A stretch of DNA of 64,000 nucleotides from Octopus sinensis (GCF_006345805.1 NC_043005.1:44888001-44952000), one strand, 5' to 3'. Shown: positions 1,446 through 60,327, counted from the stretch's first letter. Notes: generated by a model from the sequence alone, not told the origin. Translations and numbers: made by a program.

Positions 1446-1453
1446 AACATTCT

Positions 1454-1490
1454 GTACTGAGGACAGGAAGGAACCCAGAAACCGGTATAC
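1454..1490 (+). ncRNA. Minimal type I hammerhead-like motif, family 2, copy 1 (degenerate)
   Basis: gta-CTGAGGA-c-agga-aggaa-ccca-GAA-ACCGGT-A-tac. Core CUGANGA and GAAA are present, stem III is the palindrome ACCGGU, and stem I is GUA/UAC. Stem II is mismatched. Confidence 0.55.
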
Positions 1491-3762: not shown

Positions 3763-4598
3763 TATGTAATATTTAAGCCTGATATAGCAGGTTTAAATGT
3801 GAAAGGGGGAAAAGAACTAAATAGGTTATAAGTCTATAAGTCATCTGCTTAAAGTGATTGACAATTTTTACCTTGTAGCTGGTGTTTCACCATATAAACA
3901 GCTCAGTTTATCTAGCTGTATACAGACACACTAGAGTACAGCTATAGTACTAAGACAATGAGAAAGACAAATCTAACTCAAATTGCATAAATACTATTTA
4001 ATATTAAGGAACACACAAGGTGGTTAGCTGGCAGAGTTGCAACCATGCTGGGTAAAATGCTTAGCAGCATTTCGCCCATCTTTACATTCTGAGTTCAAAT
4101 GCTGCCACGGTAGACTTTGCCTTTCATCCTCTCAGGGTCAATGAAATAATTACAAGATGAGCATTGGGGTTGTTGTAATCAATTTAACCCCTTCTTCAAA
4201 ATTGCTGGTCTTGTGCCAAAATTTGAAGCCAATATTGATGAACATATGTATTCTTAGATATTCCTATGTCGGAAAAAACAGAATTTTGTTGTGTCTAGTT
4301 AGTTGGATATTTAACCAATTGACTAATAATAAAGGAGTGGAATTGAACCAGTGTGTGTGTTAATAATATTGGCATAATGACTCTTCTTAGACACAACAAA
4401 ATTTGTTTCAAGACATGAATTCATATAAAGAATCTTTCATACCAGATATAAAAATGAAGTAAAAATAAAAACATAACTGTTATTATGTGAATGTCTTTGA
4501 TAATAAGTCTGTTCAACTTGGAATGATTTGAGATTAAGTAACTATGATATGACAACAAATACACTGTTGCATCCAACAGTATATAACTAATAAATACT

Positions 4599-6710: not shown

Positions 6711-6823
6711 TACTGGAAGCAGACAGAGCAAGCTTTGCGTAGCTGAGAGGAGAATAATTCTAAAATGTATCTTATATTATTCTCTTCTCAGCTACGCAAA
6801 GCTTGCTCTCTCTGCTTCCAGTA
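6711..6823. ncRNA. 48-bp-stem hairpin, pre-miRNA-like or MITE-like
   Basis: Arms 6711-6758 and 6776-6823 are reverse complements with 2 differences (one is a G-U pair on +). Loop is 17 nt. Confidence 0.5.
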
Positions 6824-7040
6824 TGTTATATTATATTATACAGAAAGGTTAAGATGTTTCAAACAAGTAAATTTATATTAAAAAACAAAAGAAGAAAGAA
6901 AGTATTTACATTTTTACCAAAATAGACTACCTGTTTCAATCACTTTAAAAGATGATTTAGTCATGCTGAAAAAGAAGGAAAAATAAACTGAAAAGAAATC
7001 TTTCATTATATATTTTCTGAAAGTCCACGTGTTTTCTTAC

Positions 7041-7144
7041 AAAAGCACAAGGTGCTGGTAGTTGGTTTCCTTCTGATAATTGTTGGGTTGTAGTAGGAGT
7101 AACAGTTCAAGCAGAGGCAGTTGTCCTTTATCATTAAGGAGTGT
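7041..7144 (-). CDS. Putative internal exon of the unidentified minus-strand gene (TLLNDKGQLPLLELLLLLQPNNYQKETNYQHLVL)
   Basis: Acceptor cttttgctatAG (7146-7145), donor GTAAGA (7040-7035). 104 nt, open in phase 0 to phase 2. Confidence 0.45.
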
Positions 7145-8072
7145 CTATAGCAAAAGTGAGATAAAAGAAATAACTCAGACTGGCAAGTACCTTGTATAGG
7201 AACAACAGATACAAATACAGGTATAGTAGATAACATACAACATAAATTCTTGGTTCATTAAGCTTAGAGGGTGTGTCACAGATACTAAATCACAACTGAG
7301 AATAGTTTTGTAAGAGAAGAGGGTTAATAAATTAGGAATCTAGAATTCTTCAGAATTGACTTGTCGTTAAGTAAAGGAGAGGCTGGAGATAAGAAGACAT
7401 GTATTTCGTCCTCAACAGCTGTCATTTGCATAACAGATGTCCTGTGCTGGTGATGCCTATTGAGGTAGGAACAATTTGGCACTTAGTAATAGTTCCACAT
7501 CTGCCCTTTGGTAATTGTGACACAATTTCTAGAGGTAGAGAAATGTTATTTAATCAAGAATTTATGTTGTATGGTATTTAACATCCCTGTATGCCTGTTG
7601 TTCATTTACATGCTTCTGGCCACTCTGAGTTTTTTGTTTTAGCTATTTTTTGTCTTATATATGCATGTGTGTATATATATATACACATACACACATATGT
7701 GTGTGTGTGTGTGTGTGTAGGTATGTCATTATTCAGTTTTATTTCAAGATTTCTTGCCAATAGAGAAAGAGTTGGTTTCGAACCTAGATCCAAAGCTGGA
7801 ATTTCAACATCAACAACAGGATACTTTTGTATGTATGTATGTATGTATGTATGTATTGATGGATGGATGGATAGACGTATCAGTGGCTTGGGGTGATTGT
7901 TGTATTGGGTGTGCTGCCACACCCAATGCCACCAAATTTCAAGGAGGGTTATAACAAAATTTTTCCATTAAGATTTGTGATTAAATTAATGAGTAAGGTT
8001 AATATTTATGATGAATTTGCCATTTTCGATGGGTGTGCAGCGCACACCTAGCACACCCAGAATATATGCCCC

Positions 8073-8400
8073 TAGTATGTATGTATGTATGCATGTATGT
8101 ATGTATTATGTATGTATGTATGTATGTATGTATGTATGCATGCATGCATGTGTGTGTGTGTGTATGTATGTATGAATGTATGTATGTATGTATGTATGTA
8201 TGTATGTATGCATGCATGCATGCATGTATGTATGTATGTCTGTGTGTGTGTTTATGTATGTATGTATGTATGTATGTATGTATGTATGTATGTATGTGTG
8301 TGTGTGTGTATGTATGTATGTATGCATGCAAGTATGTATGTATGTACGTACGTATGTATATATGTATGCACGTATGCATGCATGTATGTGTGTATGTATA
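8073..8400. repeat. (ATGT)n/(GT)n compound microsatellite
   Basis: Directly visible. It is one of dozens of TA, TG, ATGT, CAT and ATT arrays, e.g. 9330-9530, 14620-14945, 38870-39050, 56590-56900 and 57770-58190. Confidence 0.95.
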
Positions 8401-8952
8401 CTCTACTTAAAATCTCTCATTCCTTTCCTGCTGTCATTCCACTCACTCCTACAAGTGAATCTTAATTTCATTTCTCTCACTTTTTAAGAAATTATTGCCA
8501 GATAGTTGATATACTTTCAGTAAATTTAATGCCCTTAACCCTTAACGCACACAGAACTCAACAACTGGTATTTGACTTTCTTCGTGCTTATGTTAAACTA
8601 TCGTTGTTATTTTTAATTCACCCACTGTAAACTAAAACAAGTGTTGATAAGCAACATACCAACCAACCTTCCAACAATTACTGCTAGCTTCTTGAAATTC
8701 TGATTTGTTCCAAGACCCACCGACCAGTTCTAAACTTAGTTGTTCTTATATTATCATATCCCCCAACACTCTCTCTATCTGTCTCTATTTCTCTCATTCG
8801 TTCCCTGCCCAACACATATCTCAGTGGAATTTCATTAACAGCATTCAACAACCATTAACTCACATACATGTAGCTTTTACTCTTTCCCTCTCCATCTCTT
8901 TTACTGCTACTGTCATAACATCTTTACCTATGAATTCTCTCTTCTTATCACT

Positions 8953-9001
<49 letters not shown>

Positions 9002-9429
9002 GGTTGCTTCCACTAGAATACTTCCATTCTCTCTCTGCTCTTGTTTGATGGGGCTGGAGGGTCATCCCAGGTTAGCAGACCCAGAGGCTACCAGTTCCAT
9101 ATCCTACATTCTAGAAATTCAAACTTAGCACTTCATTCAGTTCGTTCACCCTGAACTGCTACTGACTGGGAATCCTTCCATTTTTCTTTCAGTTGTCAGC
9201 ATTCAAATGCTTCATCATAACACTGACCACATCAATCTTACCAGCCTGAGAATGTTTTCTGTCATTTCCTCTCTAACTAATAAATTTTAAAATGCTTACA
9301 CAGGTAAGACACATCCACAGCATAATACACCATATATATATATACATATATATATATATACATACATATGTATATATACATATATACATATATATATATA
9401 TTATATATATATAATATATATATATATAT

Positions 9430-9464
<35 letters not shown>

Positions 9465-10275
9465 CATTACATATATATATATACATATATATACATACAT
9501 ACATATGGATTAACTATGTATATATATATATAATAACAAAGTGTATTTTTCCCTTTTGCCTACGTGGATTGTTTTCAAGTACTTTGGTTTTTCTGGGAGC
9601 CCCTTTTAAAGTAGGAGGAATAGCTAAGATTTTTTGACTGCTATTTCTAAACTTCGGTATGTGGTGAAACAAATCTTAGCTAAACCCTAATTATATATAT
9701 ATACATATATATATATGTATATATATATATATGTGTGTATATATAGATGTATATATATTTATATATATATATATATATATATAGTTGTAAAATCTCAAGA
9801 AGAGATCAGAGTAGTAACTATACTAAGACGTGAAGTCATTTGTCACATCAAAGTGACTGTTCCATGTTACTACTAGTTTAACCCCAGGCAGATTCACTGC
9901 CAGTCAGTTACCAGTGTGACTCTGCACCCTTTATATACAATACATTATCAGTGGGGGAGCAAACCCCTACCAACCTTTAACAGGTGAGAGGATCATGAGA
10001 CTGGCTCAGTTTTGAGCTATGTTGGTTGGAAGCAGACTTTGGGTAATCGCCCTGGCAGGTAGGTGGTTGTGACTGAGGATGAGCCAAATAGCTTGAAACT
10101 GAATCAGTCTCACTATCCTGTTACCTACTAGAGGCTGATAGGGATTTGCCCCCCCCCCTCCTGCTGACAATATATTGTGTATAAAGGGTAACCAGGTGGC
10201 GGAGAATCTGCTTAGGGTTAAACTAGTGGTAGCATGGAACTGTCACTTTGATGAGGCAACTGACTTTACTTTTTT

Positions 10276-10309
<34 letters not shown>

Positions 10310-10453
10310 TATATACATGTAAATATACATGTATGTCTATATCTATATACATACATGTATATATACATGTACGTATGTATATGCATATATATACACACAC
10401 ACACCATATATTATATATATAATATATATATGTATATATGTATATATATATAC

Positions 10454-10515
<62 letters not shown>

Positions 10516-11509
10516 CTTATAAACAAGGGCAAAAGAAAAAATTCTAATGCCAAATATGCCAAAAATAGACTTAAATCACCAATAACCATATAACCATATA
10601 TGTATGTATGTATATATGTATGTATGTATGTATGTATATATATATAAAGGTAAGATCCAAGGATCAAGGTGTAGGGAGTTAGTGAGCTTCAAGCAATCTG
10701 CAGAAGATATGAATAAAAACTTCCAGGAACAATAGTGGTTTATTGGCACAGAAGGTTGTGAATTGTTCCCTTATCAAAGTACGATAAACTGAAAAGAGCT
10801 AATTCTATAGTTCACAGTTAGCAACAGGGGTTGTTGTATATGCAAATAAATGTCCCAAAACGTAGAGAATGGAATAGGTAAGTTCAAGCTACATATGTTT
10901 CATAGCTAACAGAACCTCAGAAGTAGTAAATTATCCAAACAAGGATTTTACACACACACATTTTAATGTAGAATTCATGGATTTATATAATTCAGTGCTA
11001 ATCACAAAATAGCTCCAAGCAGGCTACAACCACATCATAGACTAATATGCAGGAGTATAAAATATAGAGTCGTATGCAGTTGAAATCCAATTTATTATAG
11101 ACTAAAATAAATTATTTTTGCATGATATTAGCCGTGAAATGCCTGTCACCCTGTGGATATCAACTAGTGAAATAAACATATTCATTACAAATCTCCCAAC
11201 TTACTTTATATTCCCTACACTCACACACACGCATAAACAGGCATTTATATATATGTTTGTTTGTTTTATATTTGATTATACAATTTTACATTAATCTGAT
11301 GGGTTACTCTATACTTTTGTAGAGTACAAATTTGCTATTTCTTAAACAAGAATATTATTGACAGTGACTTCAAAGCTTTACTTGTTTAAACTTCAAAGTC
11401 ACTATAAATGATAATCTTGTTTAAGATTAATAAATAAATAAATTCTTTTTAAAAATAGTTAAATATATACATTACATATATATATATATATATGTGTGTG
11501 TGTGTATGT

Positions 11510-11544
<35 letters not shown>

Positions 11545-11575
11545 AACACACACACACAAACACACACACAAACAC

Positions 11576-11614
<39 letters not shown>

Positions 11615-11616
11615 TC

Positions 11617-11860
11617 ATCATCATCATCATCATCATCATCGTTTAACGTCCGTTTTCCGCGCTAGCACGGGTTGGACGGTTCGACCGGGGTCTGGGGAGC
11701 CAGGGGCTGCCCCAGGCTCCAGTCTGATCTGGCAGTGTTTCTACAGCTGGATGCCCTTCCTAACGCCAACCACTCCGCGAGTGTAGTGGGTGCTTTTTAC
11801 GTGCCACCTGCACAGGTGCCAGAGGGGTCTGGCATCGGCCACGATCAGTTGGTGCTTTTT
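11617..11860 (-). mobile_element. SINE-like repeat, family C (…TTGGCGTTAGGAAGGGCATCCAGC…GGACGTTAAACGATGATG tail)
   Basis: (GAT)n tail on the minus strand. Further copies at about 17150-17360, 22150-22480, 31380-31550, 36920-37010, 37460-37630, 52090-52560, 58190-58340 and 59320-59610. Confidence 0.8.
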
Positions 11861-12187
11861 TTTTTTTTTTTTTTTTTGTGCTACCGGCACAGAAGCCAGT
11901 CAAGGCGGTGCTGGCATCGGTCATATATATATATATATTTGCATGATATTAGCTGTGAAATGCCTGTCACCCAATGGATATCAACTGGTGAAATAAACAT
12001 ATTTTGACTGCTATTTCCAGCGTGGTGATATCTCTTAGATACCCTGAATTATAATTTTAATAATAATTATTACCTTTGAAGGTTATTATCCCCATGCTGG
12101 CCACCTGATAAGATCGGTATTTAAATAACAATCGTATCCTTATTTATATGAATTTATATATATATATATATATATGTATAATCACAC

Positions 12188-12246
<59 letters not shown>

Positions 12247-12469
12247 GTAATAATAAAAAGTAACAACAAAAGAATGAGACCTCAATATTAGATAAATAGA
12301 AGATTATTTATATATAACTTAGAACTAACAGTAAAAGGTTGTCATTATAGTACTCAGAGTTTCAAATGTTGCCTTTAATAGCTGACAAGAATGTATCATA
12401 GTTCTCCGCTCCGACATTTGAAACTCCGAGGACTATAATGACCACCTTTTACAGTTTGCTCTAAATTGT

Positions 12470-12515
<46 letters not shown>

Positions 12516-12516
12516 T

Positions 12517-12547
<31 letters not shown>

Positions 12548-12601
12548 AAGAGACTGATAGAAAGGTTGTAACATATACAGATGTATATATATATATGTAT
12601 A

Positions 12602-12655
<54 letters not shown>

Positions 12656-12657
<2 letters not shown>

Positions 12658-14278
12658 GTTGCAGCCAAAATGTTCAGAACGGCATTGTTTTCGTCAGAAA
12701 AGTAGATATAATTTTTTATCAAAGTTGTTTTATAATTTTCACAGACAATAAATACGATATTATTTGTTATTGCCTGAGATTTTGGTGCAATTTGAGAGGA
12801 TAATACAAAAGTTATGGATGATTTAGTGATTTACTGCAAAACCCATGGCGGCCAAAATGATCAGAATGGTTGCTTTTACTCCGTGTTTTAGTATATTTAA
12901 ATGGCGAACTCTAATGTTTTGAATTTGTTTACGTGACGGTTCGTTTACTAAACATTAGTAAGAATATTTGCAGTGTACTTTGTTAATATAATGCCACTTA
13001 CTCCGTTACCAATTCGTCAGCAGATTATTAAGCTTCGAAGGAAGGATAATTTAAGTATTGGATCTATTGCAAAGATTGTTAACAAGTCAAAAAGTGTTGT
13101 ACACGGTATTTTTAAGGTGTACGATGATTGTGGTTCGTGTGAAGCAAGAAAGTTTACAGGTAGGCCAAGAAAAACGACCAAGAGAGAAGATCGTGCTATG
13201 GTAAAGTTGGTTAAAAAGGACAGATTTAAAACTGCTGCTACTGTTTCTCAGAAAATGAGCATTGTATTGAAGAAAACTTTATCTCGAAAAACTGTGTCTC
13301 GTCGTTTAGTTGAACATGACCTACAAGCAAGAGCACCAGCAGTGAAGCCACTGATCAGCTCCAATAATAAAAAGTGCCATCTTACCTTTGCAACCAAACA
13401 TGTGTTGTGGTCTCAAGAAAAATGGCAAACGGTGCATTTCAGTGATGAATCTAAGTTTATGCTATTTGGCTCAGATGGGAAAAGGTACGTTCGTAGAAAA
13501 GTAGGTGAAAAATTGTTGCCTAAATGCCTTAAGACTAGTGTTAAATTTGGTGGAGGAAGTGTCATGGTTTGGGGAATGATATCTGGAGATGGTGTGGACC
13601 CTTTGGTGCGATTACATGGAAAGTTAAATGCAGGAGTTTATAAACAACTTGTAAAAGATCATGTCTTGCCTGTGCTGAGAAATTCAACTAAGCGACCACT
13701 CATATTCATGCAGGACAATGCCCCATGTCACAAGGCTAAGGTGGTCATGAACTTCCTCAAGACTGAAAAGGTTATTGTTATGGATTGGCCAGCTCAAAGC
13801 CCAGATCTCAATCCTATTGAAAATGTGTGGAATATTCTAGGAGAACATTTGAAAGCCAGCAATCCTGAAAACAACTGAGCAATTATGGAATGCCCTTCAG
13901 GAAGAATGGAATAAGATCACCCAGCAAGAAATTGAAAATTTAATTTCCTCATGCAGTCGAAGATGTCAGAGTGTGATTGAAGCTAAAGGGCTTCACACTA
14001 AATATTAAATAATTCCAGTATTTTCTGTCATTTTTGATTATTTTGTTATTTTTTCAACCGTTCTGATCATTTTGGCCACCATGGATTTTGCAGTAAATCA
14101 CTAAATCATCCATAACTTTTGTATTATCCTCTCAAAGTACACCAAAATCTCAGACAATAACAAATAATATCGTATTTATTGTCTGTGAAAATTATAGAAT
14201 ATAAAACAACTTTAATAAAAACTTATACCTACTTTTCTGACGAAAACAATGCCGTTCTGAACATTTTGGCCGCAACTG
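12656..14278 (+). mobile_element. Tc1-family DNA transposon, IR/DR architecture, 1623 bp
   Basis: TA on both sides (12654-55, 14279-80). Long TIRs 12656-12872 and 14055-14278 start with CAGTTG. Each TIR has an outer and an inner copy of GCGGCCAAAATG(T/A)TCAGAACGG. Confidence 0.95.
12991..14008 (+). pseudogene. DD34E Tc1 transposase with a single +1 frameshift near 13866-13872 (338 aa if corrected)
   Basis: N-terminal HTH, GRPR linker, FSDESKF, QDNAPCH and DLNPIE with 34 residues between D and E. Frame 0 stops at 13876-78. The +1 frame continues TTEQLWNALQEEWNKI…IEAKGLHTKY to TAA at 14006-08. Confidence 0.92.
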
Positions 14279-14302
14279 TATGTATGTATGTATATATGTA
14301 TG

Positions 14303-14338
<36 letters not shown>

Positions 14339-14417
14339 TATATGCATATTATATTATATATCACTAATTTTTCTATTTGGTTTGCAAGATTCTTTATGTG
14401 AATTCGTGTGTTGAAAT

Positions 14418-14612
14418 AAATTTTGTTTTGTCTAAGGAGTGGCATTACGGCAATATTAATAACACAGTCACTGCTTCAGTTCCATTCTCATATTAGTAAT
14501 GAATTTTGTTAAATAGTTGGATAGATATTTAACCAATTGGATTAATAACAAAGAAGTGGAGTTGAATCAGTACATATATTATTGATATTAGCTTAATGAC
14601 TCTCCATAGACA
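14418..14612. mobile_element. Palindromic MITE-like repeat (AATTTTGTTGTGTCTA…TAATGACTCTCC…TAGACACAACAAAATT family)
   Basis: Imperfect inverted arms. Related pieces at about 4275-4440 and 15420-15625. Confidence 0.55.
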
Positions 14613-14655
14613 TAAGATATTTTATATATATGTAAATAAATGTGTGCATATATAT

Positions 14656-14746
<91 letters not shown>

Positions 14747-14751
14747 TATAA

Positions 14752-14850
<99 letters not shown>

Positions 14851-15058
14851 ATATATATATATATATATATACGCGTATATATGTATATATTCTTATATTC
14901 ACATGTGTGTGTGTGTACATTGATGATATATATATATATATATAAAGTTTGCTTCCCAACCACATGGTTCCAGGCGGCACCTTGGGCAAGTGTCTTCTAC
15001 AATAACCTCGGGCCTTGTTAGTGGATTTGGTAGACGGAAACTGAAAGATGCCTGTCAG

Positions 15059-15089
<31 letters not shown>

Positions 15090-15809
15090 TGTATGTGTGT
15101 GTGTGTCTTTGTGTCTATGTTTGACAACCAGTGTTGGTGTGTTTACATCACCGTAACTTAGCAGATCAGCTAAAGGAACTGATAGAATAGGTATTATGCT
15201 TAAGAAGTAAGTCCCAAGACAGTGCTCCAGCATGGTCGCAGTCAAATGACTGAAAGAAGTAAAAGAGTACATGAATAAAAGAATATGTATATATATATAT
15301 GTATGTATATCTTTATATCTATATCTATATATATGTGTGTATATATATATATGTGTGTGTGTGAGTGCGTATATGTGTGTATATATATGTTTGTATGTAT
15401 ATATACACACATATTTCGTTTTTGTATTAGGCTTGCAAGATTCTTTATGTGAATTCATATGTTGAAGCATATGAAGCATATGAATGGGGAGAGTCATTCA
15501 GAGGTTGCAAGAAGTAATGAAAATTTCAGGAAAAAGAAATAAGTAAATGTGTAGAAAATGAACTGGTGAGTGTGTTAATTAATAAGGCATTTAAACAGAA
15601 CGACTCTCCCCAGACACAATAATATATATATATATAGACACTTGCATCGAATACCAAGCAGTGGGGCTGAACTTTGAACCAAGTCTTATTATACAACCAC
15701 ACCCATGTCTGCCATATATAATGGCTGCATCTTTTCTGATTTATGAACTCTTAGACAATTTAGACACACACACTCCCACACCACACACAAATATATATAT
15801 ATATATTAT

Positions 15810-15841
<32 letters not shown>

Positions 15842-16007
15842 ATATATATATATATCATGCTAGCATGGAAAGTGGATGTTAAACGATGAAGATGATGATA
15901 TAAGTAGTTGAATGAATTATCCTAGTATGGATAGTTCGGTTAACTGATACCGGATAGCAAATTCACGTCAGAAAAACACGGTTGAAGCTACATGTATATA
16001 TATATAT

Positions 16008-16072
<65 letters not shown>

Positions 16073-17801
16073 TGTGTTTACATATATATATATATGGTGT
16101 GTTTACATATATATCCCTCTCTCTCTTTCGGAGAGGCACTGAGCAGCTATACGCATACATACACACACGGCAGTAACTTCCGCCTACCGAATTCAATCAC
16201 AAAGCTTTGGTCAACTCGGGGCTATAGTGGAAGACACCTACCCAAAGTGTCACGCAGTGGGACTGAACCCGAAACCATGCAGCTAAGAAGAAAGCTCCCT
16301 AACCACATAGCCATGCCTGCACCTAATATTTATATTTATATTCATATATATATAGGGCAGCCTATTAATAGAGTTATTACAGTGTATTTGTGTGTGTATG
16401 TGTGTGAGTAAGCAATATAAATGTCCATAAATCAGGAAAAATGCAGATGCTATATAGCAGACACTGGTCTGGTTGTATGATAAAAAGTTTACTTCCCCAC
16501 AACATGGTTCAAGGTTCAATCCCACTGCATGGTACCTGGAGCAAGCACCTTCTACTATAGCCCTGGAATTAACCAAAGTTTAGCCTGGGGCTATAGTAGT
16601 ATATATAAGATCCTTGAAGCTGGCCTAATGACTGCTTGATAACATGGCCTAATACCTGAAACCAGTAAAAGAAAGAACAGTGGAATAAAATTACTATAGA
16701 AACTAGTTTCATCTTTTATTCTTTCCAACTCTACTGTCTTGTTATTCCTCCTGCCTCAAGTGTACTTACTTCTCATTTAAGCCCCTTCCTATATGCAACA
16801 AAGGCCATCGATAACTTCTTTCTACTATTTTTGACTCTGGACTGTCTTTGAAGAAAAGGCCTTCCTCTCACAGGTCGTGTTGATTTTCAGTTGTCATCAA
16901 TATTTCTTTACTCTTTAAAACTTTTATTACACATACAAAAAAGACTAAAAAGAAGCAAGTATTAGAATTGTTCTAAACCAAATGTCCCAAATGGCGGTGC
17001 CCCAGCATGGCCACAGCTCATGGGCTGAAACTAGAATCAATCAATCAATGTTTCTACCCTACAGCAAAACACCTGTTCCTGTCCCACTGTCATACTTTAA
17101 CCTCTCATCACCTGTTATCTCTGAGAGTGTCATCATCATTATCATCATTGTCGTCGTCGTCATCATCATCATTTACTGTTCATTTTCCATGTTAGCATCG
17201 GTCAGACGGACGGTTTGACCGGAGCTGATAAGGGCCAGGGCTGTACCACACTCCATGGTCTGTTCTGGCATGGCTTCTATAGCTGGATGCCCTTCCTAAT
17301 GCCAACCACTCCACAGAGTTGTATTGGGTGCTTTTTATGTGGCACCAGTACCACTGCTTTTAACGTAAGAATCCTCAGGCACCTCCTCCATAGGGGTCCT
17401 ATCAGAAACAACCCTCATTAGATTTTCCAGCTGGATTCTCAAGTATGACCAACTGAAACTATGTCTATGAGCCAATCATCTCATTCTTGGTCTACACCTC
17501 AGCTTGAAGAATCCATCTTATGATTCTTTCCAGTCACATTCTAATCAGATGTCCATTGTACCAGAGCTGGGAACACTCACTGAAGAAAAGTAGCAGCTCA
17601 ACCACACACACATATCATCATCATTTTCATCATCATCATCATTTAGCGTCCGCTTTCCATGCTAGCATGGGTTATATATACATAAATTAGAGAAACCACT
17701 ATTATGCAATTCAATTTATATATATATTATATATTTATATTGTGAAATTTGATTTAATACTAAATTGAATTTTTCCCTGTAAAGTTTGGAGTTATACTCC
17801 C

Positions 17802-17833
<32 letters not shown>

Positions 17834-17837
17834 TCCC

Positions 17838-17927
<90 letters not shown>

Positions 17928-18348
17928 ATCAGTGGATCCCACTTGAAAAAGAAGCACACTCTAAAAGAGCAATTATGTTTTACATGAAGTTAAATATACG
18001 TCCAGTCATAGAGTGACCAATGGCTTCACATCCATATAGCACTTACCTTTATTAACGACTCATCAGACTCCAATGGTCAAAGGCATGTAACCTCTCTTCA
18101 ATATACAAGGCTCAGTCAAAAGCCACCTGACAGTAAATCAAAACTATTTAATTCCAAGATTTATTTATGTTTTATAACTGAATGAATTTAATAAAAGCAT
18201 CTAAATGTGAAACATCATAAAGATTGTTCAAACTGAAGTCCTTATTGAGTGACGCATTTTTCCATTCGAGTCAATACAAAATTACATGTAGTATTTATGG
18301 AATTTTGTTTTACTTGTCAGGTGACTTCTGGCCAACCCTGTATGTATG

Positions 18349-18379
<31 letters not shown>

Positions 18380-21089
18380 AGAAAAAAAATGGAGATTAGG
18401 AAGTTAATTGTTTATTATTAACAACAAATTGGTCATCTTTGCTTCTTATAGCTGCTTCAATTAATAGTCAATAATTTAATTACAAATTTGTAAATTAAAT
18501 TTACATTTATGTGGCATGAGTATAATTTCAATGGAGGAAAAAAAAATGTACCTTTGGATGATATATGTGGTCTTACCAATTCATTTCAGCAGTCTGCTGA
18601 AATTAATTATTAACTTGCTAATCTTCATTTTATTTTCTTCTTTAAAATGGATATAAATTATATGCACCGATTGTTTAAAGAGAATTTCATTCCCCAAGAA
18701 TACTAGGTATTAAACCAGTATTTCTTTGGATGCAACCAACCCTTCGTGAGGTTAACGTACACTCTAATAAAATTTATATGTATGTATATATGTATATATA
18801 TATATCAGTAAAAAATTTTGCTAGTTTATTTTGTCTCTCTGTCTTCTCTCCAAGTGCTGCTATATGAACATTTAATGTGGCTTTAGAGTCAGGTTTTGAC
18901 TGCTATTTCAGCGTGGTGGTATCTCTCAGATACCCTAAATTATAATTTAAATAATTATTACCTTTGTGAGTTTTTTTATTCCCATGCTGGCCACTTGATA
19001 AGATCAATATTTAAATATCGATCTTATCCTTATATACATTAATAATAATAATAATAATAATAATACTTTTAATGCAAGTACAGAGATAGATATTTGAAAT
19101 AAGGATTTAGTTCTACTGCTGCAAGGGATAAACGTAGAATTTACTGGCCCCCACTAGGGCCGTATTAGTAATAGGCCCCTGGGTAAATCAATGCACTGGG
19201 CCTTATAGTATTTATGAATTGGCAGCCAACTGCAATATACATATATCAGAATCAGATCCCTAGACCTATGAGGCCTCAGGATAACTACCTACTGCACCCA
19301 TAACTAAGGACACTACTGCTCCCACCCTACCTTAAAACCAAAACATAACATAATACGTAGCAAAAGTGCCAACCGCAACCCTAAGATAAAATAATAAAAT
19401 GATGTCTCTTAGGGAGGACCATCTTTTCACCCCTTTGGGAGGAATATGAGAGAGATCAAAGACAAAAGTTTCTCTGGCAAAATTAGGGCCCAGAAACGAG
19501 GAAAAACGTAACTAAATCGCCTTGCCACCCATGAAACACACTGTGCTACAATCGATTAGGGAACTCTTTGTGCCATTTTTAACTAAGAGATTTTAACAAG
19601 AACGAAAGTTGGTTCTGGAATGTAATTAAATGAAACCGTTATTTATCTGGTGTTTTCTTCCCTAAAAGAACAAGGGATGTGATTAAATGCCGCAAGGCAT
19701 TTTGCCCGTATCGATTCTGTCCAATCTACCGCAACTTTTGACTTGAAAGAAAGCAAAACAAAACAAAGAATGTAAAAGTTTGTAAAAATCTGCTAAAGAG
19801 AAAAATTAATGTCAACAGGAGTTATCTCCCTTCACATGCTAAATTCTCTTCGCATTTTCTGTGCTATTTTTATTTACATTTCGGAGAAGGAAAACAATGA
19901 ACTTATCTTTCATCTAATTCTTTTCTACTCTAGATACAAGTCCCGAAATTTTGGGGGCGGGAGCCAGTCGAATAGATCAACCTTAGTATGTAACTGGTAT
20001 ATAATTTATCGACCCCGAAAGGAAATGTGTGTTTGGGTATGTGTGTGCGTCTAGATACCTGTTTATATGCACATTTTGTTGTTACTTACACATGTCTATA
20101 TTCCTATCTAAAGATTTGTGATTTCTAATCTGTGTATCATTGAATATTTCTTTATTTATATTTATCGAGAATCTGTTCACAGTTCCTTAAATAAATTCAC
20201 CAACACACACTCAGATTTACGTCTCTACCTTTCTGCATATATTTCTCATTCCCTCAGTGCATATGTTTGGAAAAGAAAAAAAGGATCACACACACACACA
20301 CATCAGGCGCAGGCGTAGCTGTGTGGTAAGAAGTTTGTTTCCCAACCACATGGTTCTGGGATCAGTCCCATTGTGTATCACCGAGGGCAAATGACTTCGA
20401 TTATAGTCTTGGGCCAATCGAAGACTTGTAAGTGGATTTGGCAGACAGAAACTGAAAGAAGCCCATTGTATTTATGTTTGCATGTGTGCGCATCCTACCA
20501 CTGCTTGATATCTAGTATTGTTGCATTTACACTCCCCGTAACTTAGTGATTCAGCAAAAGAGACTGACAGGATATAAAAAAAAGTCCTTAGGTTGATTCA
20601 TTCGACTAAAAATTCTTCAAAGCATGACCACTGTCTAATGACCACTGTCTAATGACCACAGTTTAATGACCAAAGTTTAATGACTGAAACAAGTGAAAGG
20701 TAAAAGATAAAAAATATATGTATATATATTTATTCTTTTATTCTTTACTTGTTTCAGTCAGTTGACAGCAGCCATGCTGAAGCTTGCCTTTAGTTGAACA
20801 AATCAACTCCAGGACTTATACTTTGTAAGCCTAGTGCTTATTCTATCAGTCTCCTTTGCCAAACCACTAAGTTACAGGGATGTAAACACACCAACATGGG
20901 TTGTCAAGTGGTGGTGGTGGTGGGCAAACACAGACACACAAACATATACATACATATATACATATATGTGTGCGCGTGTGTATGTTTATATATATATAAA
21001 ATTAAATAAAGGTAGAAATTCATATTAATCAATTAAAACCAGTGGCTTAGCATATTTAAAAAAATCCGAAGATTAAAAATTGTGTTACA

Positions 21090-21292
21090 TACAAAATTAA
21101 GAGGAATGACACTAAAGTGGACAGCCTATATGCTAAACATAGACGTCAAGTCGCCATTACCACGAAGAATGTGTTCTCAAGAATTTTTCTTGAAATTTTC
21201 TTGAGAACATATTCTTCATGGTAATGGCGATTTGACATCTGTTTAGCATATAGGCTGTCCACTTTAGTGGTTATTTCTCTAAATTTTGTGTA
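21090..21292. repeat. Fold-back palindrome, arms about 95 bp
   Basis: Core arms 21110-21185 and 21196-21269 (CACTAAAGTGGACAGCCTATATGCTAAACA…) differ by 4 transitions and a 2-nt indel. Looser pairing extends about 20 bp further out. Confidence 0.85.
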
Positions 21293-22953
21293 TATATACA
21301 TATATACGTATATATATATATATATATATGTGTGTATATATATATATATACGATGGGCTTTTTTCAATTTCCATCTACCAAATCCACCCACAAGGTTTTG
21401 GTCAGACCGAGGCTATAGTAGAAGACACTTGCCCAAGGTGCTAAACAGTGGGACTGAACCCAGAACCATGTGGTTAGGAAGCAAACTTCTTACCACACAG
21501 CCACTCCTATATTATATTATCCAAAATATATAGTATTATATATCCATCATGGTTGATCTTACCAGTCAGTTTCGCGCAAAGGAATACAATGGAGTGTTAG
21601 GTAACAATCCAATTATTTAACCCTATGCTCATCAGAATTAACTGATATGGAAGGTAATATGGCGACTGGAAGGGAATATGACGATACATATATATGTGAG
21701 CATGTGTATGTGCGTGTGTGTGTGGGGGTGGGTAGGTGTATACATACACATGCAAGGCACAAAATGCAAAACAAGATATACAAAAACAGTACTTCGATAC
21801 TAAAGGCAGAGTGAAATACTAGTTTATTAAATCCAGGAATATCCTTCACAAATTTACTTTACGCTTTGATAAAATAGTTTATTTGTGTGTGTGTGTATTT
21901 ACAGAATTACTGAACCATAGGATAAACTACCTGCATCAGTGGTTAGCAGTTCAGACACCACATTCTTCAAAACTTCCATGCTTCCTGAAATTCACCAACA
22001 GTACACCTGAAGACCCCACATCCCCACACAGCCTTGTTTCTTCTTTCTTTTTCTAAAAATCTTTTTCAATGTTCACTTCCTGTACATATTCTATGTATTG
22101 TTCATGCAGTTTTGGTTACTTTTTCTGATGAGTTGTAGTGCACCTGAGCAGACACTAAACTCTTCTTGCGAAGACCTGTTGTGGCAAGTGAAATCGAAAT
22201 TGAAATCAAATTCGATGACTGGCATCCGTGCTAGTGGAGCGCTAAGAGCACCATCTGAGCATGATCGTTGCCAGAGCAGCTAACTGGCTTCCGTGCCAGT
22301 GGCACGTAAAAGCGCACACTGCACTCTCGGAGTGGTTGATATGAGGAAGGGCATCCAGCTGTAGAAACTCTGCAAGATCAGATTGAAGCCTGGTGCAGCC
22401 ATCTGGTTCGCTAGTCTTTAGTTAAATTGTCTGACTCATGCTAGCATGGAAAGCGGACGTTAAACGATGATGATGATGATGATAATGATGATATATATGT
22501 ATGTATGTATGTATACTGGTGCAGGAGTGGCTGTGTGGCAAGTAGCTTGCTTACCAACCACATAGTACCAGGCTCAGTCCCACTCCGTGACACCTTGGGC
22601 AAGTATCTTCTAGTTTAGCATTGTGCCAACTAAAGCCTTGTGAGTGGATTTAGTAGATGGAAACTGAAAGAAGCCTGTCGTATATATATGTTTGTGTGTT
22701 TGTATGTCTGTGTTTTTTTCCTCCACCATTGCTTGACAACCAATGTTGGCATGTTTTCATCCCTGTAACTTAGTGGTTCTGCAAAAGAGACTGATAAAAT
22801 AAGTACTAGGCTTACAAAGAATAAGTCCTGCAGTTGATTTGTTCGACTAAAGGCATTGCTCCAGCATGGCTGCAGTCAAAAGATTGAAACAAATAAAAGA
22901 AAAGAATAACAGAATATATATCTTTTAGTCATGGTATAAAGAATGGCCATTAC

Positions 22954-23072
22954 ATATTTTTCCTTTATTAGAATAAATTTGGCTTACAGATGTTTCCAGT
23001 AGTCATTAATGTATTTATAATGGCTACTGGAAACAGCTGTAAGCCAAATTCACTCTAATAAAGGAAAAATAT
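22954..23072. repeat. Fold-back palindrome, 55-bp arms, 9-nt loop
   Basis: Arms 22954-23008 and 23018-23072, 4 mismatches. The right arm contains GAA-ACAGCTGT-A-AGCC. Confidence 0.85.
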
Positions 23073-23430
23073 TTAATATCAATTATTTATGCCTTGTCTT
23101 ATATATCATGCTGTGTAAAAACCAGTTTGACTGGTGTTCGACCATGGATTTACAATATAGAATTGTGATGGACCATAAACTCAAACCCTGTCATAATAAT
23201 ACTTGGAGTTCTTCACTAATCTAAACAATATTGTTAACCAGGTGTGCCAACAGAGAACTCATAAGTATTTTGCCTGGATTGGTGATCCCTCACTATTAGC
23301 TCTGTTACACACACACCCACACATATATATATATACATACATATATGATCCAATAGTGGTAGAATCAACAAAAAAAGTATTCCATCAAGTGAGATATAAA
23401 TATCAATTAAAATTCACAACCGAAGAATTT

Positions 23431-23578
23431 ACTAATAGTTTCATAGTATTATGATACTTGAACAGGCATGTTTATAAAATATGCTATGTATCTTAAAGCG
23501 ATCTTTCAGGCTTTAAGATACCTGGCATATTTTATAAATATACCTGTTCAAGTATCATAATAGCATGAAACTATTAGT
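23431..23578. repeat. Fold-back palindrome, 69-bp arms, 10-nt loop
   Basis: Arms 23431-23499 and 23510-23578, about 6 mismatches. Confidence 0.85.
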
Positions 23579-23611
23579 AGCTCTTTCAGGTGTATATTTA
23601 GATTTATATGT

Positions 23612-24667
23612 ATCCTAGCAGTATCACCCGGTGTTGCTTGGGTTTGTTTCGACCCTTTAGAATTGGAATTTTTGAAAAGTAAAAATTTTGCATTATGCAA
23701 CTTGTTATTCTCTTCAAGTGAACATTTTTCCAGTTGAAATACACCGAAAAATGGTGACACAGCAGTCAAAAATAGGGATTTTCATAGAAAAAAAAGCACC
23801 TTTTTGCTGTAAATAATTTTTGGTGTTAACATGGTCCAATTTGAATTTTATCTTCTACAGAATGAAGAGCAAACCTTCTATCATACTCTCAATTTTGGTC
23901 AACTTGCGCTGCAGGGTCTCAAAGGAGATAGTGTTAGTTGAAGGCTACCAAACCTGCCACACACAGACAACTTCAGCTTTATATATATAGATTTGCTACA
24001 CACTACTTTCCATCCTTAATAATGAAACTTGGTAGATCTAAAAGTTAAACACACAGACACACACACAGATACACACACAGACATACAAGTTGAGTTTTAT
24101 ATATATAGATTTCTCAACGGGGATTTCAGGGGAGAGTTACAGGGAGTCGCTGGCGATGTATCGATTTGATCAAAAATCCGGCCTGCTAATATTTGGTTAA
24201 AGTGATTCAAACTGCAGACTCAACGCAAAATTGTCACATTTAATTCAAAGCGTTAAAAATGTTAACGATTGATAACGAAAAAACCCTCCAGGCTATATCC
24301 CGAAAATTCATTTCTTTGCCGAATTTCTACAATGTTTATGGCGATTCGTTTTTATATCTTGATTTTTTATTTGTCATGCAATTTACGCATGCTTGCAAGT
24401 GTGGTAAATACAGTTCACGTCAAACAGCTGACTGAGTTAAGTTCACTATTCAATGCATGGGATAAGGCGCAAACAAACACATTATCAATTTTTGCACTTG
24501 CAAGATGAATTTCGGAACAGAAATAGTGCAGTTCAATTTTCATTCGCCTAAACTTTAAGTGACCCATTTTTGGTGGTTCTACGATTTGTTGGCTAGGAGG
24601 AGATGTGCCGGGAAGTTAAACACACTGACACACACAGACACACAAGTTGAGTTTTATATGTATAGAT
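23612..24667 (+). mobile_element. Cluster of non-autonomous Helitron-like (Lep1/HINE-type) units
   Basis: 5' end ATCCTAGCAGTATCACCCGGTGTTGC. Three ends of the form (ACAC/ACAG)n…TTTATATATATAGAT at 23992, 24110 and 24667. Family assignment is from recalled similarity only. Confidence 0.5.
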
Positions 24668-24688
24668 ATGCATATATATATATATATA

Positions 24689-24737
<49 letters not shown>

Positions 24738-24836
24738 GTTCTAGGTAAATGCTTCATCATATCTTTAATTTTCCTCTATATGGTATGATTTAAGTATATC
24801 ATTGTTGAATTGCTTCATGGTGGTTCTTCTCTAATT

Positions 24837-24868
<32 letters not shown>

Positions 24869-25252
24869 GGGGTGCAATGGCCCAGTGGTTAGGGCAGCGG
24901 ATTCGTGGTCATAGGATCGCGGGCAATGTGTAGCAACATCTGATAGCCTGGTTGGTCATGTGAGCCTGAATTTAAAAAAAAAAAGAAAAGAAATAAAAAC
25001 TTGTTATTGAAGAACTTGTACCATGATTGTTATTTTAAGTGGAGTAAGTTAGTGCAGAATCTACCCTGCTCATTCCTAATTGAGTAACTTGGACTGGTGC
25101 ACAGTGTGCCATATATCAAGCAAAAAAGGAATCATGCTAAGGAAGATGATGATAATGATGATGATGAAGATGAAGATGAGGACAACAACAATAACAATGA
25201 TGATGGCGACGACAATGATGATGATGATCAAGAGGATTATCATCATATTCAT

Positions 25253-25445
25253 CATTGAGCTCAGAGCAGTCCCCTGGCTTGTCAGTTCCTGTCAAACTAT
25301 TCAACCTATACTGGTATGGCAAATCATCATTATCATCATCATCACCGTGGATGTTAAACGATGATGATGATGATTTTCCATACCAGTATAAGTTGAATAG
25401 TTGACAGGAACTGACAAGCCAAGGGGCCTGCTCTGAGCTCCAATG
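25253..25445. repeat. Fold-back palindrome built from a diverged family-C SINE tail
   Basis: Arms 25253-25343 and 25360-25445 are near-identical reverse complements and share the same deviations from the other family-C copies. Confidence 0.85.
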
Positions 25446-25458
25446 TTTGCTTTATATA

Positions 25459-25501
<43 letters not shown>

Positions 25502-25579
25502 ACACATATATATATACAGTACTAACCATGCTCTCCATCTTTTCAACTCTTTCTCCATCCCTCTTCACCCCTCTTAACT

Positions 25580-26420
25580 TCTCTTTACTCTTGATATCAA
25601 GAGTCTATATATGGTGATCCCACACAACAAAGGGCTTCTTGCCCTCAAACACTTCCTATACCTTTAACCCAACACCCAACCTGACACATCCACACTTCTT
25701 TTCTGGCCAAACTTGTTCTATCCTCAACTGCTTTTCCTTCAAGGGGGAGTTTTACCAACAGCTTTCAGGAGTGGCCATGGTAACTCCAACTTTCTCTGTG
25801 AAAAGGAATTGATTTTCTTTCTTCGCTCCTTTGTGCCACATGGGCTCAACTCCACTACCCTCTTTATCTGACTCCCTCCTCTCCTCTCTTGCCCTGACAC
25901 CTACTTCCTCTCTTTACTCCTACCCACCTTCTCTCTTCATTCATACCTCCATCCATCCACACCCCACCTCCACCACACATCCTTACCCCACCCACACATT
26001 CTCATCCAAAATACACACCCCACACCCACACCCACACCACCTACTTCCCAGCACCCACACCATCCACACACCCACACACACATTCACATGTCAAAGTCAC
26101 CAGCCCCTATCCACACATACACACTTACTCTCATATACACACATGCACACGCACCTTCACTTTGGGATCACCAGTACTTTATTATCTCCCCTTCTCCTAG
26201 GCTTTCCTGTCCAACTACCTTTTTTCAACTAGTCACCCTGATTGATCACTAAATCCACAAGTTTTTTTTTTATTCGCTCTCTGTTTATTTCCTCGTGTTC
26301 CTCTCTGTTGAAGAGCATAGGCTTGAAATGTAAAAGACTTTCTCACCTTCTCGAGGATCAAACTAATACACCTGCTTGTTGTTTATACACCTGTCTTCAT
26401 CTTTTGTTTTCCTGTTAATT
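25580..26420 (+). mobile_element. Degraded Penelope-like element: RT fragment plus 3' pLTR
   Basis: Broken frames give LFTLDIKSLYMVIPHNKGLLALKHFL and LNCFSFKGEFYQQLSGVAM (RT motifs typical of Penelope-like elements). A hammerhead-like motif lies at 26301-26337. Confidence 0.7.
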
Positions 26421-26453
26421 TCAAATACACACACACATACATACATACATACA

Positions 26454-26487
<34 letters not shown>

Positions 26488-26501
26488 CACACACATACAT
26501 A

Positions 26502-28143
26502 CAAGGTGCATTCCTGAAGTTTTAAGACTTTTTTTTAGGAGAGACAGTTCTAACTGTCCAAGGTTATTGTAATTTTTGTATATTATTTCTATGCATAAAA
26601 TAAGCTGACCTGCCAACTTTTGTTATTCTAAATTGAAGGAAACAGCTGTAACAGCACTTTGAACACACCCTACATATTACACCTTACTGGTTTGAAGAAT
26701 GCAGTTGAGACATGAATACAATTTGGAAGGTTGCTGTACAATAAAGTTTTTGTGTTAACCCTTTTTTTACCATATTTCTGTTGAAATGCTCTGTGTTTCT
26801 TTCACTTAATTTTAAATATAACAAAGAATTTAGTAAAATAACTTAGTTATCATTGAGCTAGTGTTAGGAACATAAATTGTGACTGAGGTTTGGTGGAAGA
26901 TTTTAATTCAGAACTTTTGGAAACAAGACATTTGTACTACAGAACCAGAAACGGTTTCAGCTGGGTTGGTATCAGAAGGGTTAAATAGGGCAAAAAATAC
27001 TAGTGAAACTTATAAAATGCTCCAGAATGCTTATGGATTAACTTGTACGAGCTGAACATGTGTTTTGCTGACACAAAGGACCAGGCAAATTAAGTCTATC
27101 AAGAAGCTCATGATGATCCTTTAGTGATAGGTCTCAAGTCTCCCTTTGTTTTGCTATGGAATCTTATATACCATTGTATAATATATTTTGCATGTTCACA
27201 CATGGAAGTAACAAAAGAAATTAACTTTAAAATAACAGAAAGACTTTATTCTTCCATAAAGTGGTACAATGGATCAAATAAGAAATATTACGAATTCTAG
27301 TAACCATAGGTCATCCACTATATGAATAATTCAACTTAGGTTGTCATTAGTTACATGTGCTCTGTTATATTAATTTTCCTCTGGTAGAAAAGAAATCAGC
27401 ATAACTCGTCTTAATGAAAATCACTGACCCCTCTGATTTAAATAATTTGTCACGTGAATTTTGGGAAAAGGTAGACTCCAGAGCGCAAACCAATTAGTTG
27501 TTACAGAATGTATTATGTGCAATGTAATTAGACCTTCGATCCAAATCCCATGCAATACTCAACCAACCACAGCACAAGACTCATCCAATGGTCAAAACTC
27601 ACATGATGGGTAAAATGACCAATCATTACAGATTACTGTGCTGAGCCTATAAAGGGCTAATTGTCTTCAATATGCCATAATAGAAACTGGTAATGATACA
27701 ATCCTCTTTTTCAATAACGAGGGATTCATCTACATTCACTGGGTTCCCTCTGGACAGACAGTCAACAAACAGTACTTTGTATAGCTTTTGAAGGAGTTCA
27801 GGAAGAGATTCCATCACAAAAAGCTAAAGAGTCTGCAACAGGATAAAGCACCACTCATCAATTCCATCCTGGTAACCAACTACTTGACATTAAAACAATG
27901 GGCCTTAAAACATCTCTCACCCTCCCTACACTCCAGACTGTGCTCCCTGTGACTTTTGGTTGTTCCTCATGCTGATGGAGGCTGTGACAAGGGACCTGGA
28001 CATTTTCACTTTGGAGTTGCTCGAGTGCTACAACTAGAGTAATAATATCAGAGGATCCTACTTTGAAGGAGACTAGAGTTTTGTACTTCATTGAAATTAA
28101 TGAATGTCTTTCTTGGAACAGTCTCAAAACTTCTGGAATGCAA

Positions 28144-28147
<4 letters not shown>
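26502..28147 (+). mobile_element. Degenerate mariner (DD34D-type) element with nested insertions
   Basis: TIRs CAAGGTGCATTCCTGAAGTTTTAAGACT and AGTCTCAAAACTTCTGGAATGCAATTTG. Fragments KFCVK*GKNTSETYKMLQNAYG, HWVPSGQTVNKQYF and PYTPDCAPCDFWLF. Confidence 0.75.
26759..26980. mobile_element. piggyBac-type MITE
   Basis: TTAA at 26755-58 and 26981-84; termini CCCTTTTTTTACCA and TGGTATCAGAAGGG. A similar TTAA/CCCTT-ended MITE lies at about 41265-41490. Confidence 0.8.
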
Positions 28148-28187
<40 letters not shown>

Positions 28188-28345
28188 TGTGTGCACATAC
28201 ACACATATATATATATGTATAGACATATATATTCACATGTATATATATATGTATATGTACATATCTCTATGTATATGTATGCATATATCTGTGTGTGTGT
28301 GTGTTATATATACATACATATATGTATATATATATATATATTTAC

Positions 28346-28621
28346 CGAAAAAAGCATAGTGTTTGCTGATTTTAACCCACACTGGTGGAAAGGGGAGAGC
28401 AGAAATTCTTCGCTTGCATATTTGAGTTTGTTGGCACTGTTAGTTTCGAGCGGATCTTCAGAAGCGATAAGAAGCCGAAAGGGTATGCTCCCACTTTCAG
28501 TGTTTTCAAATCCAAACCAGGGAGTTCTGAGCTGATGATAGAAATGTCGATTTTGACTAATCTTGAAACGTACGTTCTCAAATAACCTTTGCATTTGATT
28601 TTTTAATGTCTCTACCCCCAT
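28346..28621 (-). CDS. Putative first coding exon of the unidentified gene divergent from MORN5 (MGVETLKNQMQRLFENVRFKISQNRHFYHQLRTPWFGFEN…KSANTMLFS)
   Basis: ATG at 28621, 92 open codons, donor G|GTAAAT at 28345 (phase 0). Upstream acceptor ctctctcatatAG at 28650-49 keeps the frame open from 28648. Unique, CpG-retaining sequence. Confidence 0.55.
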
Positions 28622-28762
28622 ACTTTCGTGAGTTGAATTGAGCAAACACTATATGAGAGAGGTTTTCTTTAAGTATTAGAAATAGTTTTATAAATGTTTT
28701 TTTAGCTGCTATTTCTAATGAGTTCAGTATGCGGCAAAGTAATTTATTTTACTAAGCCCTTT

Positions 28763-29964
<1,202 letters not shown>

Positions 29965-31990: not shown

Positions 31991-32100
31991 GTAGTTGAGA
32001 AAAACCCTCCAACTCAACAAAAATGAGATTCTGTCAAGACTTCTCCCATAACTCATCTTCTGACACCCATCCCTCAATCAATCTCCTAACTATGACACTA

Positions 32101-37160: not shown

Positions 37161-37200
<40 letters not shown>

Positions 37201-60245: not shown

Positions 60246-60327
<82 letters not shown>

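Follow-up and report, generated by a model that had tools for sequence, protein, structure and literature searches.

Described systems that bring long inverted arms close together include replication template switching, which creates hairpins in one step and inverts hairpin loops in a second step (PMC10710096), the palindromic, Stowaway-like miniature inverted-repeat transposable elements (MITEs) of the Tc1/mariner type, which target TA, and the inverted Alu pairs of primate transcripts, which are substrates of ADAR. Here we analyse a set of hairpins residing in a stretch of 64,000 nucleotides of the Octopus sinensis genome (GCF_006345805.1 NC_043005.1:44888001-44952000), the whole of which is referred to below as the window. 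In our judgement they are rather probably a mixed set of palindromes that derive from repeats and show no sign of a selected function, i.e. the typical debris of a repeat-rich mollusc genome. This set would be composed of (i) a hairpin formed in situ by template switching within a fragment of a short interspersed nuclear element, SINE (25253-25445), (ii) units of dispersed families that contain a long palindrome (14416-14625 and 59992-60108, together with 18372-18643 and 4276-4408), and (iii) TA-ended single copies, which would represent non-autonomous elements of the Tc1/mariner type, two of them placed at the ends of SINE (TA)n tails, much as the Tc1 transposon of the window lies in (TA)n. 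Once formed, the stems would decay at the neutral rate.

A sequence-only reading of the window had reported nine hairpins, all of which are present and fold as described; the one reported at 22954-23072 is the near-perfect core of a longer hairpin, 22927-23099. Four more were found: 20681-20760 with a gapped detector, 18372-18643 and 4276-4408 by family searches, and the decayed pair 59343-59591. Arm lengths, identities, loops and termini were taken from gapped arm alignment.

4276-4408: hairpin, second copy of family B (unit 4276-4455)
6711-6823: hairpin, arms 48 nt, 96% identity, loop 17 nt, TA...TA ends, z-score -16.1, no other copy in the window or in the O. bimaculoides locus L001
12313-12470: hairpin, arms 57 nt, 86%, loop 44 nt, TA at both ends
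14416-14625: hairpin, arms 100 nt, 73%, decayed, family B
18372-18643: hairpin, long copy of family A
20681-20760: hairpin, arms 39 nt, 85%, loop 2 nt, short (TA)n-like centre
21090-21292: hairpin, arms 99 nt, 88%, loop 2 nt, TA...TA ends
22927-23099: hairpin, arms 82 nt, 85%, common to O. bimaculoides (L001 1035-1207)
23430-23579: hairpin, arms 70 nt, 91%, TA...TA ends, common to O. bimaculoides (L001 3651-3800)
25253-25445: hairpin, arms 85 nt, 92%, inverted duplication of a SINE-2 3' fragment
59343-59591: decayed SINE-2 inverted pair, arms ~108 nt, ~72%
59992-60108: hairpin, arms 43-61 nt, 81-86%, loop 31 nt, short copy of family A
62675-62790: hairpin, 35-nt unique arms around a (TA)n/(TATG)n core, TA ends

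These hairpins are real and non-random. An ungapped palindrome scan of the window gave 27 matches, comprising 20 (TA)n-type microsatellites and 7 matches of complex sequence, while the same scan detected no complex palindrome in any of 10 dinucleotide shuffles and none in a mirror control (reversed but not complemented). When eight of the hairpins were folded as RNA, their minimum free energies ranged from -34 to -99 kcal/mol (z-scores -9 to -19), and none of 200 dinucleotide shuffles was as stable. The claim that the arms are more alike than dispersed repeat copies are to each other proved correct (85-96% identity, or 73% in 14416-14625, versus ~74-85% for two abundant SINE-like repeats). The description of the hairpins as unrelated had to be given up, since 14416-14625 and 59992-60108 have relatives in the window and the arms of 25253-25445 are derived from a SINE.

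The origin of the hairpins was approached by comparison with the orthologous locus of the sister species O. bimaculoides (L001), which is colinear with window positions ~21884-37608 (identity about 91%; 6.15% substitutions in ungapped columns); it begins at window position 21884 and covers the sites of four of the reported hairpins. Together, the window and L001 amount to 84 kb of Octopus DNA, in which relatives of the hairpins were sought. Two features serve as references in this comparison.

29428-29964, plus strand: MORN5, anchor for the orthologous locus
31384-31551, plus strand: canonical single SINE-2 copy with the order body - CAGAC - GTTAAAC - (GAT)n, reference for the arms of 25253-25445

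The hairpin 25253-25445 is the most informative. Its arms match the 3' part of SINE-2, an abundant SINE-like repeat whose canonical 3' end, present in at least nine copies in the window, reads body...CATGGAAAA, 5 nt, GTTAAAC, (GAT)n; the loop and inner stem are formed by the microsatellite tail region of this repeat. The O. bimaculoides ortholog carries the right arm alone, i.e. one 5'-truncated SINE-2 copy in minus orientation with the canonical (ATC)n-TTTAAC-linker-body order. The arrangements in the two species are as follows.

O. bimaculoides: flank...CATCGTTG / TTATTATCATAATCA / TTTAAC ACCCCCT / body...CTCCAATG / TTTGC
O. sinensis: flank...CATCATTG / inverted body / TCATCATTATCATCATCATCA / CCGTGGAT GTTAAAC / (GAT)5 / body / TTTGC

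The left flank finishes in CATTG and the inverted arm opens with these same five bases, a microhomology; the 69-nt insert specific to O. sinensis is an inverted copy of the adjacent sequence. This is true of no other among the approximately 10 indels of at least 12 nt that separate the two species in ~14 kb of aligned sequence. Product models were built from the O. bimaculoides sequence and aligned to that of O. sinensis: a two-switch model, of the form A / rc(R) / T1 / rc(T1 GX) / R / B (rc, reverse complement), scored 182, whereas one-step models reached 153-156 and a model devoid of any event 34. An origin of 25253-25445 in situ, through replication template switching, is supported by this comparison. 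Starting from a 5'-truncated SINE-2 in minus orientation, as still found in O. bimaculoides, a template switch primed on the 5-nt CATTG would have copied the body in reverse, beyond the microsatellite tail. A second switch would then have inverted the loop, so that tail plus linker, as reverse complement, took the place of the linker and the 85-bp stem was produced. Two other routes considered for this hairpin, twin priming and two independent SINE insertions, were rejected in view of the central position of the tail, the single tail motif and the one shared truncation point; both O. sinensis arms end at an identical 5' position, which in itself excludes two independent insertions.

The decayed pair 59343-59591 has the same layout (inverted body, central tail, only one tail, the left copy being devoid of its own). 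This architecture equals the first template-switch step proposed for 25253-25445, and the arms, only ~72% identical, are old. Fold-back template switching, one of two recurrent processes put forward by the sequence-only reading, thus stands for 25253-25445, on account of the single arm in O. bimaculoides, the CATTG microhomology and the two-switch model. It is plausible for 59343-59591, 62675-62790 and 20681-20760, which may share this kind of origin, and it fails as a general cause, because two of the hairpins belong to dispersed families and five end in TA...TA. The other proposed process, inverted insertion of Penelope type, finds no support: there is no reverse transcriptase or GIY-YIG coding remnant among the window open reading frames (ORFs) of at least 75 aa and no hammerhead in an Rfam search of the window, the arms of the hairpins are mutually unrelated, and the SINE arms are placed tail to tail. 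A head-to-head arrangement is expected of Penelope-like elements with an inverted partial copy.

The second class is represented by two families. In family A, 18372-18643 and 59992-60108 have inverted termini of ~60 nt in common, separated in the long copy (18372-18643) by a 184-nt spacer; a partial third copy lies at 59851-59899, and the short copy lies right where a SINE (TA)n tail stops. Family B consists of 14367-14625 and 4276-4455, which are mutually inverted and ~80% identical. The unit 14367-14625 is composed of the palindrome 14416-14625 and a 48-nt extension, while 4276-4455 has lost most of one arm by deletion and retained both 22-nt termini. The presence of several copies identifies both families as mobile, or at least amplified, units and not local one-off events.

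The third class comprises the hairpins with TA at both ends, i.e. 6711-6823, 12313-12470, 21090-21292, 23430-23579 and 62675-62790, as well as one found in O. bimaculoides (L001 17462-17626); 20681-20760, 22927-23099 and 25253-25445 are devoid of such ends. The hairpins of the window are non-coding and 80-260 nt long, with arms of 39-100 nt, dimensions and inverted repeats that agree with those of MITEs. Four Tc1/mariner remnants are also present in the window.

12654-14281, plus strand: Tc1-family transposon with ends TA, CAGTTGCAGCCAAAA...CAACTG, TA and long terminal inverted repeats (TIRs), inserted in (TA)n
631-1457, plus strand: Tc1/mariner transposase remnant
35270-36143, plus strand: Tc1/mariner transposase remnant, Pfam Transposase_1 at 35839-36120
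63257-63998, minus strand: Tc1/mariner transposase remnant

The Tc1 element carries an ORF (12973-13878) of 301 aa with DDE_3 and HTH_Tnp_Tc3_2 domains. By eye, the remnants 631-1457 and 63257-63998 look like one family; a Pfam search of 1224-1457 and 35494-35787 gave no match. The (TA)n adjoining hairpin 12313-12470 on its right is followed, about 180 nt downstream of the hairpin, by the start of the Tc1 element, and hairpin 21090-21292 lies right where the (TA)n tail belonging to a minus-strand SINE (21358-21499) ends. Such tails are abundant: the main SINE of the window, ~170 nt long and present in ~16 copies between 3374 and 60486, ends in ...GGAAACTGAAAGAAG CCYRTC, to which a (TA)n/(TATG)n/(TG)n tail is attached, and therefore accounts for much of the (TA)n load and for many of the microsatellite 'palindromes'. 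Location at these tails fits TA-targeted insertion and also fold-back at a replication fork stalled by a microsatellite. The five TA-ended hairpins of the window would, in the simplest reading, probably be MITE-like, palindromic, non-autonomous elements of the Tc1/mariner type.

Searches of wider collections bear on these elements only in part. Six-frame peptides of all hairpins, compared with 5.8 billion proteins, gave 4657 candidates, none with E<=10, which is uninformative as to copies, and no exact product of the Tc1 ORF or of the ORF spanning hairpin 6711-6823 is on record. A 20-mer from the arm of the latter hairpin had 0 matches in a metagenome collection that holds no octopus DNA, so this result has no meaning; the 3' end of the abundant octopus SINE, used as a control, matched once by chance, in a bioreactor contig. 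A protein search with Tc1 yielded about 25 more matches from long ENA contigs. In ENA assembly ERZ21867824, which is filed as a metagenome, two AT-rich contigs of 344 and 524 kb (L003 and L004; 36% GC) contain the Tc1 family of the window (88% nucleotide identity) and are devoid of the octopus SINEs. The Tc1 relative in L003 is likewise inserted in (TA)n. In these features they resemble host DNA of another animal, possibly a cephalopod. As Tc1 is the sole element they have in common with the window, they were used as a density background only and excluded from family counts.

Also related to these elements is a 1.65-kb block of O. bimaculoides (L001 17121-18775, opposite window 36207-36214) that is absent from O. 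sinensis. It contains the remainder of a mariner element, one SINE and two hairpins, 17462-17626 and 17872-18169, the latter with 129-nt arms of 97.7% identity. O. sinensis probably lost this block through deletion.

Several observations weigh against the interpretation of the hairpins as a mixed set of repeat-derived palindromes. The polarity of the event at 25253-25445 rests on the canonical arrangement in O. bimaculoides rather than on an outgroup. Moreover, the right arm carries two derived substitutions, both of them missing from the left arm (alignments read by eye), so the event must be placed far back, near the species split. In both families, homology runs past the palindrome on one side (in family A for ~165 nt beyond the right arm, 18605-18805 versus 60070-60279, 86%; in family B over the 48-nt extension shared by both copies), and therefore they are not textbook MITEs. 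The TA termini of the single copies are self-complementary and part of the palindrome, and so are not clean target-site duplications. None of the hairpin termini matches the TIR of Tc1 (CAGTTGCAGCC...) or any other transposase-bearing remnant, with four remnants in the window, and the 84 kb, a sample that gives no power in this respect, revealed for the TA-ended single copies neither a further copy nor an empty site nor a corresponding autonomous element. Finally, the arm identity of 22927-23099 and 23430-23579 falls in two steps (~90-95% in the inner 55-60 nt, 65-75% in the next ~40 nt, then background), a pattern not expected if one insertion had simply decayed neutrally. In the former, the inner 55 nt are ~93% and the outer 27 nt ~70% identical; in the latter, weaker complementarity runs ~30 nt further outward. 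At both sites an older palindrome could have had its centre re-copied later.

This two-tier identity, which could reflect re-copying of the inner stem, is among the arguments for a more uniform explanation, in which fold-back template switching, frequently at forks stalled by SINE microsatellite tails, produced most or even all of the hairpins on the spot, hence their unique sequences. Template switching can indeed maintain hairpins (PMC8794818). The sole case that can be polarised, 25253-25445, is of this type, seven hairpins adjoin or enclose a microsatellite, loops are short (2-44 nt), and six hairpins have no relative in the 84 kb, although such absence is uninformative for families of fewer than about 40,000 copies. 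We nevertheless regard this explanation as unlikely, since the several copies of families A and B share their palindrome boundaries, 6711-6823, 23430-23579 and O. bimaculoides 17462-17626 are TA-flanked with no microsatellite nearby, and only 1 of the ~10 medium-sized interspecies indels is an inverted local copy. The opposite extreme, that all hairpins are ordinary insertions of MITEs or other TIR elements at background density and that the half-site of O. bimaculoides at 25253-25445 arose by secondary deletion of one arm, appears less likely still. It would agree with the TA ends, the Tc1/mariner remnants, the multi-copy families and a clam locus that reaches the same density with one MITE family. 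It is at odds with the SINE-2 origin of the 25253-25445 arms and with the exact canonical tail-linker-body order kept by O. bimaculoides: besides eliminating one arm, the deletion would have to take out (GAT)n and turn the loop back. Moreover, no hairpin terminus matches a Tc1/mariner TIR of the window. Equally doubtful is the bolder proposal that in octopus genomes template-switch fold-backs are unusually frequent and also unusually long (70-130 nt), starting where replication stalls at SINE microsatellite tails; were it true, unique hairpins would be continually seeded in introns and intergenic DNA, supplying dsRNA (double-stranded RNA) for the expanded ADAR system of coleoids.

Coleoids edit RNA heavily, and the hairpins would form long dsRNA if transcribed. 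The heavy editing, the great stability of the long stems and a weak, sub-threshold likeness to microRNA (miRNA) hairpin models speak for the hairpins being selected RNA genes or elements (precursors of hairpin RNAs or miRNAs, or ADAR-recruiting structures), which we consider very improbable. An Rfam search gave no match at the gathering score, and under a relaxed E-value threshold nothing but generic hairpins and unrelated miRNA models of microsatellite type, on both strands and far below that score; the stems, 48-100 bp long, far exceed animal pre-miRNAs. A small-RNA survey of molluscs, including O. bimaculoides, revealed little Dicer processing of long dsRNA, and it was suggested that editing could melt these RNAs (PMC12479628). 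The two hairpins shared with O. bimaculoides differ between the species at 22 of 323 positions (flanks: 65 of 755, Fisher p=0.39; remaining alignment: 6.15%), and of their stem pairs 124 are intact in both species, 11 are shared mismatches and 17 are broken in one lineage, with no compensatory changes. Divergence at the rate of the flanks, combined with the lack of compensatory changes, gives no sign of selection for structure. If initially perfect, the shared stems would be roughly 2.3 times as old as the split between the two species, with neutral decay ever since. Nor is there a minus-strand host gene on record in 19.4-40 kb. The first six hairpins had been assigned to introns of a predicted minus-strand gene, an assignment that finds no support in this part of the window: the sole gene in the record for 19428-39964 (L002, tied to the window through the MORN5 ORF and not base by base) is MORN5, on the plus strand, no exon-like conserved block occurs in 21.9-26.8 kb, and ORF filtering for host-gene exons left 223 candidate segments, none of them convincing. 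The orthologous position of these same two hairpins, 22927-23099 and 23430-23579, in an independent O. bimaculoides assembly also contradicts, for those two, the notion that the hairpins are assembly artefacts from chimeric fold-back reads. Palindromic chimeras are possible in long-read assemblies, but the arms differ by 4-27%, whereas artefacts are expected to be near-identical, and the hairpin structures span only 80-260 nt. We therefore reject an artefactual origin, to which we attach next to no probability.

The density of the hairpins was said to be unusual, which is correct with respect to chance and finds no confirmation with respect to other genomes in a small sample. The window contains about 1.3-2 hairpins per 10 kb. 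The background consists of single 20-27 kb loci analysed with two different detectors, a further point against our interpretation.

O. sinensis window: 8 in 64 kb (gapped detector)
O. bimaculoides L001: 4 in 19.7 kb (gapped detector)
cephalopod-like ENA assembly, L003: 2 in 21 kb (gapped detector)
Argonauta: 0 in 20.5 kb (gapped detector)
second ENA locus, L004: 1 in 21 kb (second repeat detector)
Mercenaria MORN5 locus, L006: 3 in 27 kb (second repeat detector)
Littorina, L007: 0 in 23.7 kb, only a (CA)n/(TG)n pair (second repeat detector)

The three Mercenaria hairpins (arms 51-106 nt, 84-96% identity) all belong to one MITE family. Clustering within the window is real, with 9 of the 13 hairpins in 6.7-25.4 kb and none in 25.5-59.3 kb, in an interval that was picked post hoc.

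The anchor gene deserves a separate comment. MORN5 (MORN repeat-containing protein 5) of O. sinensis is intronless, with an ORF of 178 aa; the O. bimaculoides protein is 94% identical, and the exact product is recorded only in O. sinensis GCA_006345805.1, chromosome CM016867.1. The gene is uninterrupted, as one ORF, in O. sinensis, O. bimaculoides and Argonauta hians (L005 10001-10555), and stretches over 7.3 kb in the clam Mercenaria (L006 10001-17323) and 3.7 kb in the snail Littorina (L007 10001-13730). In view of this difference, octopod MORN5 may be a retrogene that replaced an intron-bearing parent.

Taken as a mixed set, the hairpins include no new kind of element, and nothing in the window by itself suggests a special process. 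What it provides is one clean base-level example of an 85-bp stem made in one lineage, through template switching, from a SINE tail. Transposition and replication errors would both feed the pool of dsRNA-capable hairpins in octopus.

The closest described counterparts of 25253-25445 are the template-switch hairpins of Loytynoja and co-workers (PMC10710096, PMC8794818). In common with these, one replication error would have produced a reverse-complement copy right beside its source, the switch being marked by microhomology; loop inversion and extension of the stem followed in a second event, and a near-perfect stem arose from DNA that had been unstructured before. It differs in that the copied tract, ~70 nt, is at the upper end of the published sizes (28, up to 83 bases) and that its source is a SINE 3' end with a microsatellite tail; the octopus case is, in addition, known from DNA sequence alone. 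The Tc1/mariner palindromic MITEs resemble the octopus hairpins in being short and non-coding, with arms of nearly full length and TA at both ends, and the latter are located near or in (TA)n in a genome with Tc1/mariner transposases. In contrast to such MITEs, the octopus termini match no autonomous element seen, and families A and B extend past the palindrome on one side. As in the inverted Alu pairs, 25253-25445 and 59343-59591 have closely spaced inverted SINE arms that would give long dsRNA if transcribed; unlike in those pairs, the octopus arms come from duplication of one insertion and not from two independent insertions. Finally, the MITE hairpins of the bivalve Mercenaria (L006) are similar to those of octopus in length, arm identity (84-96%) and density (3 in 27 kb), but the clam copies represent one family, whereas the octopus hairpins comprise many different sequences.

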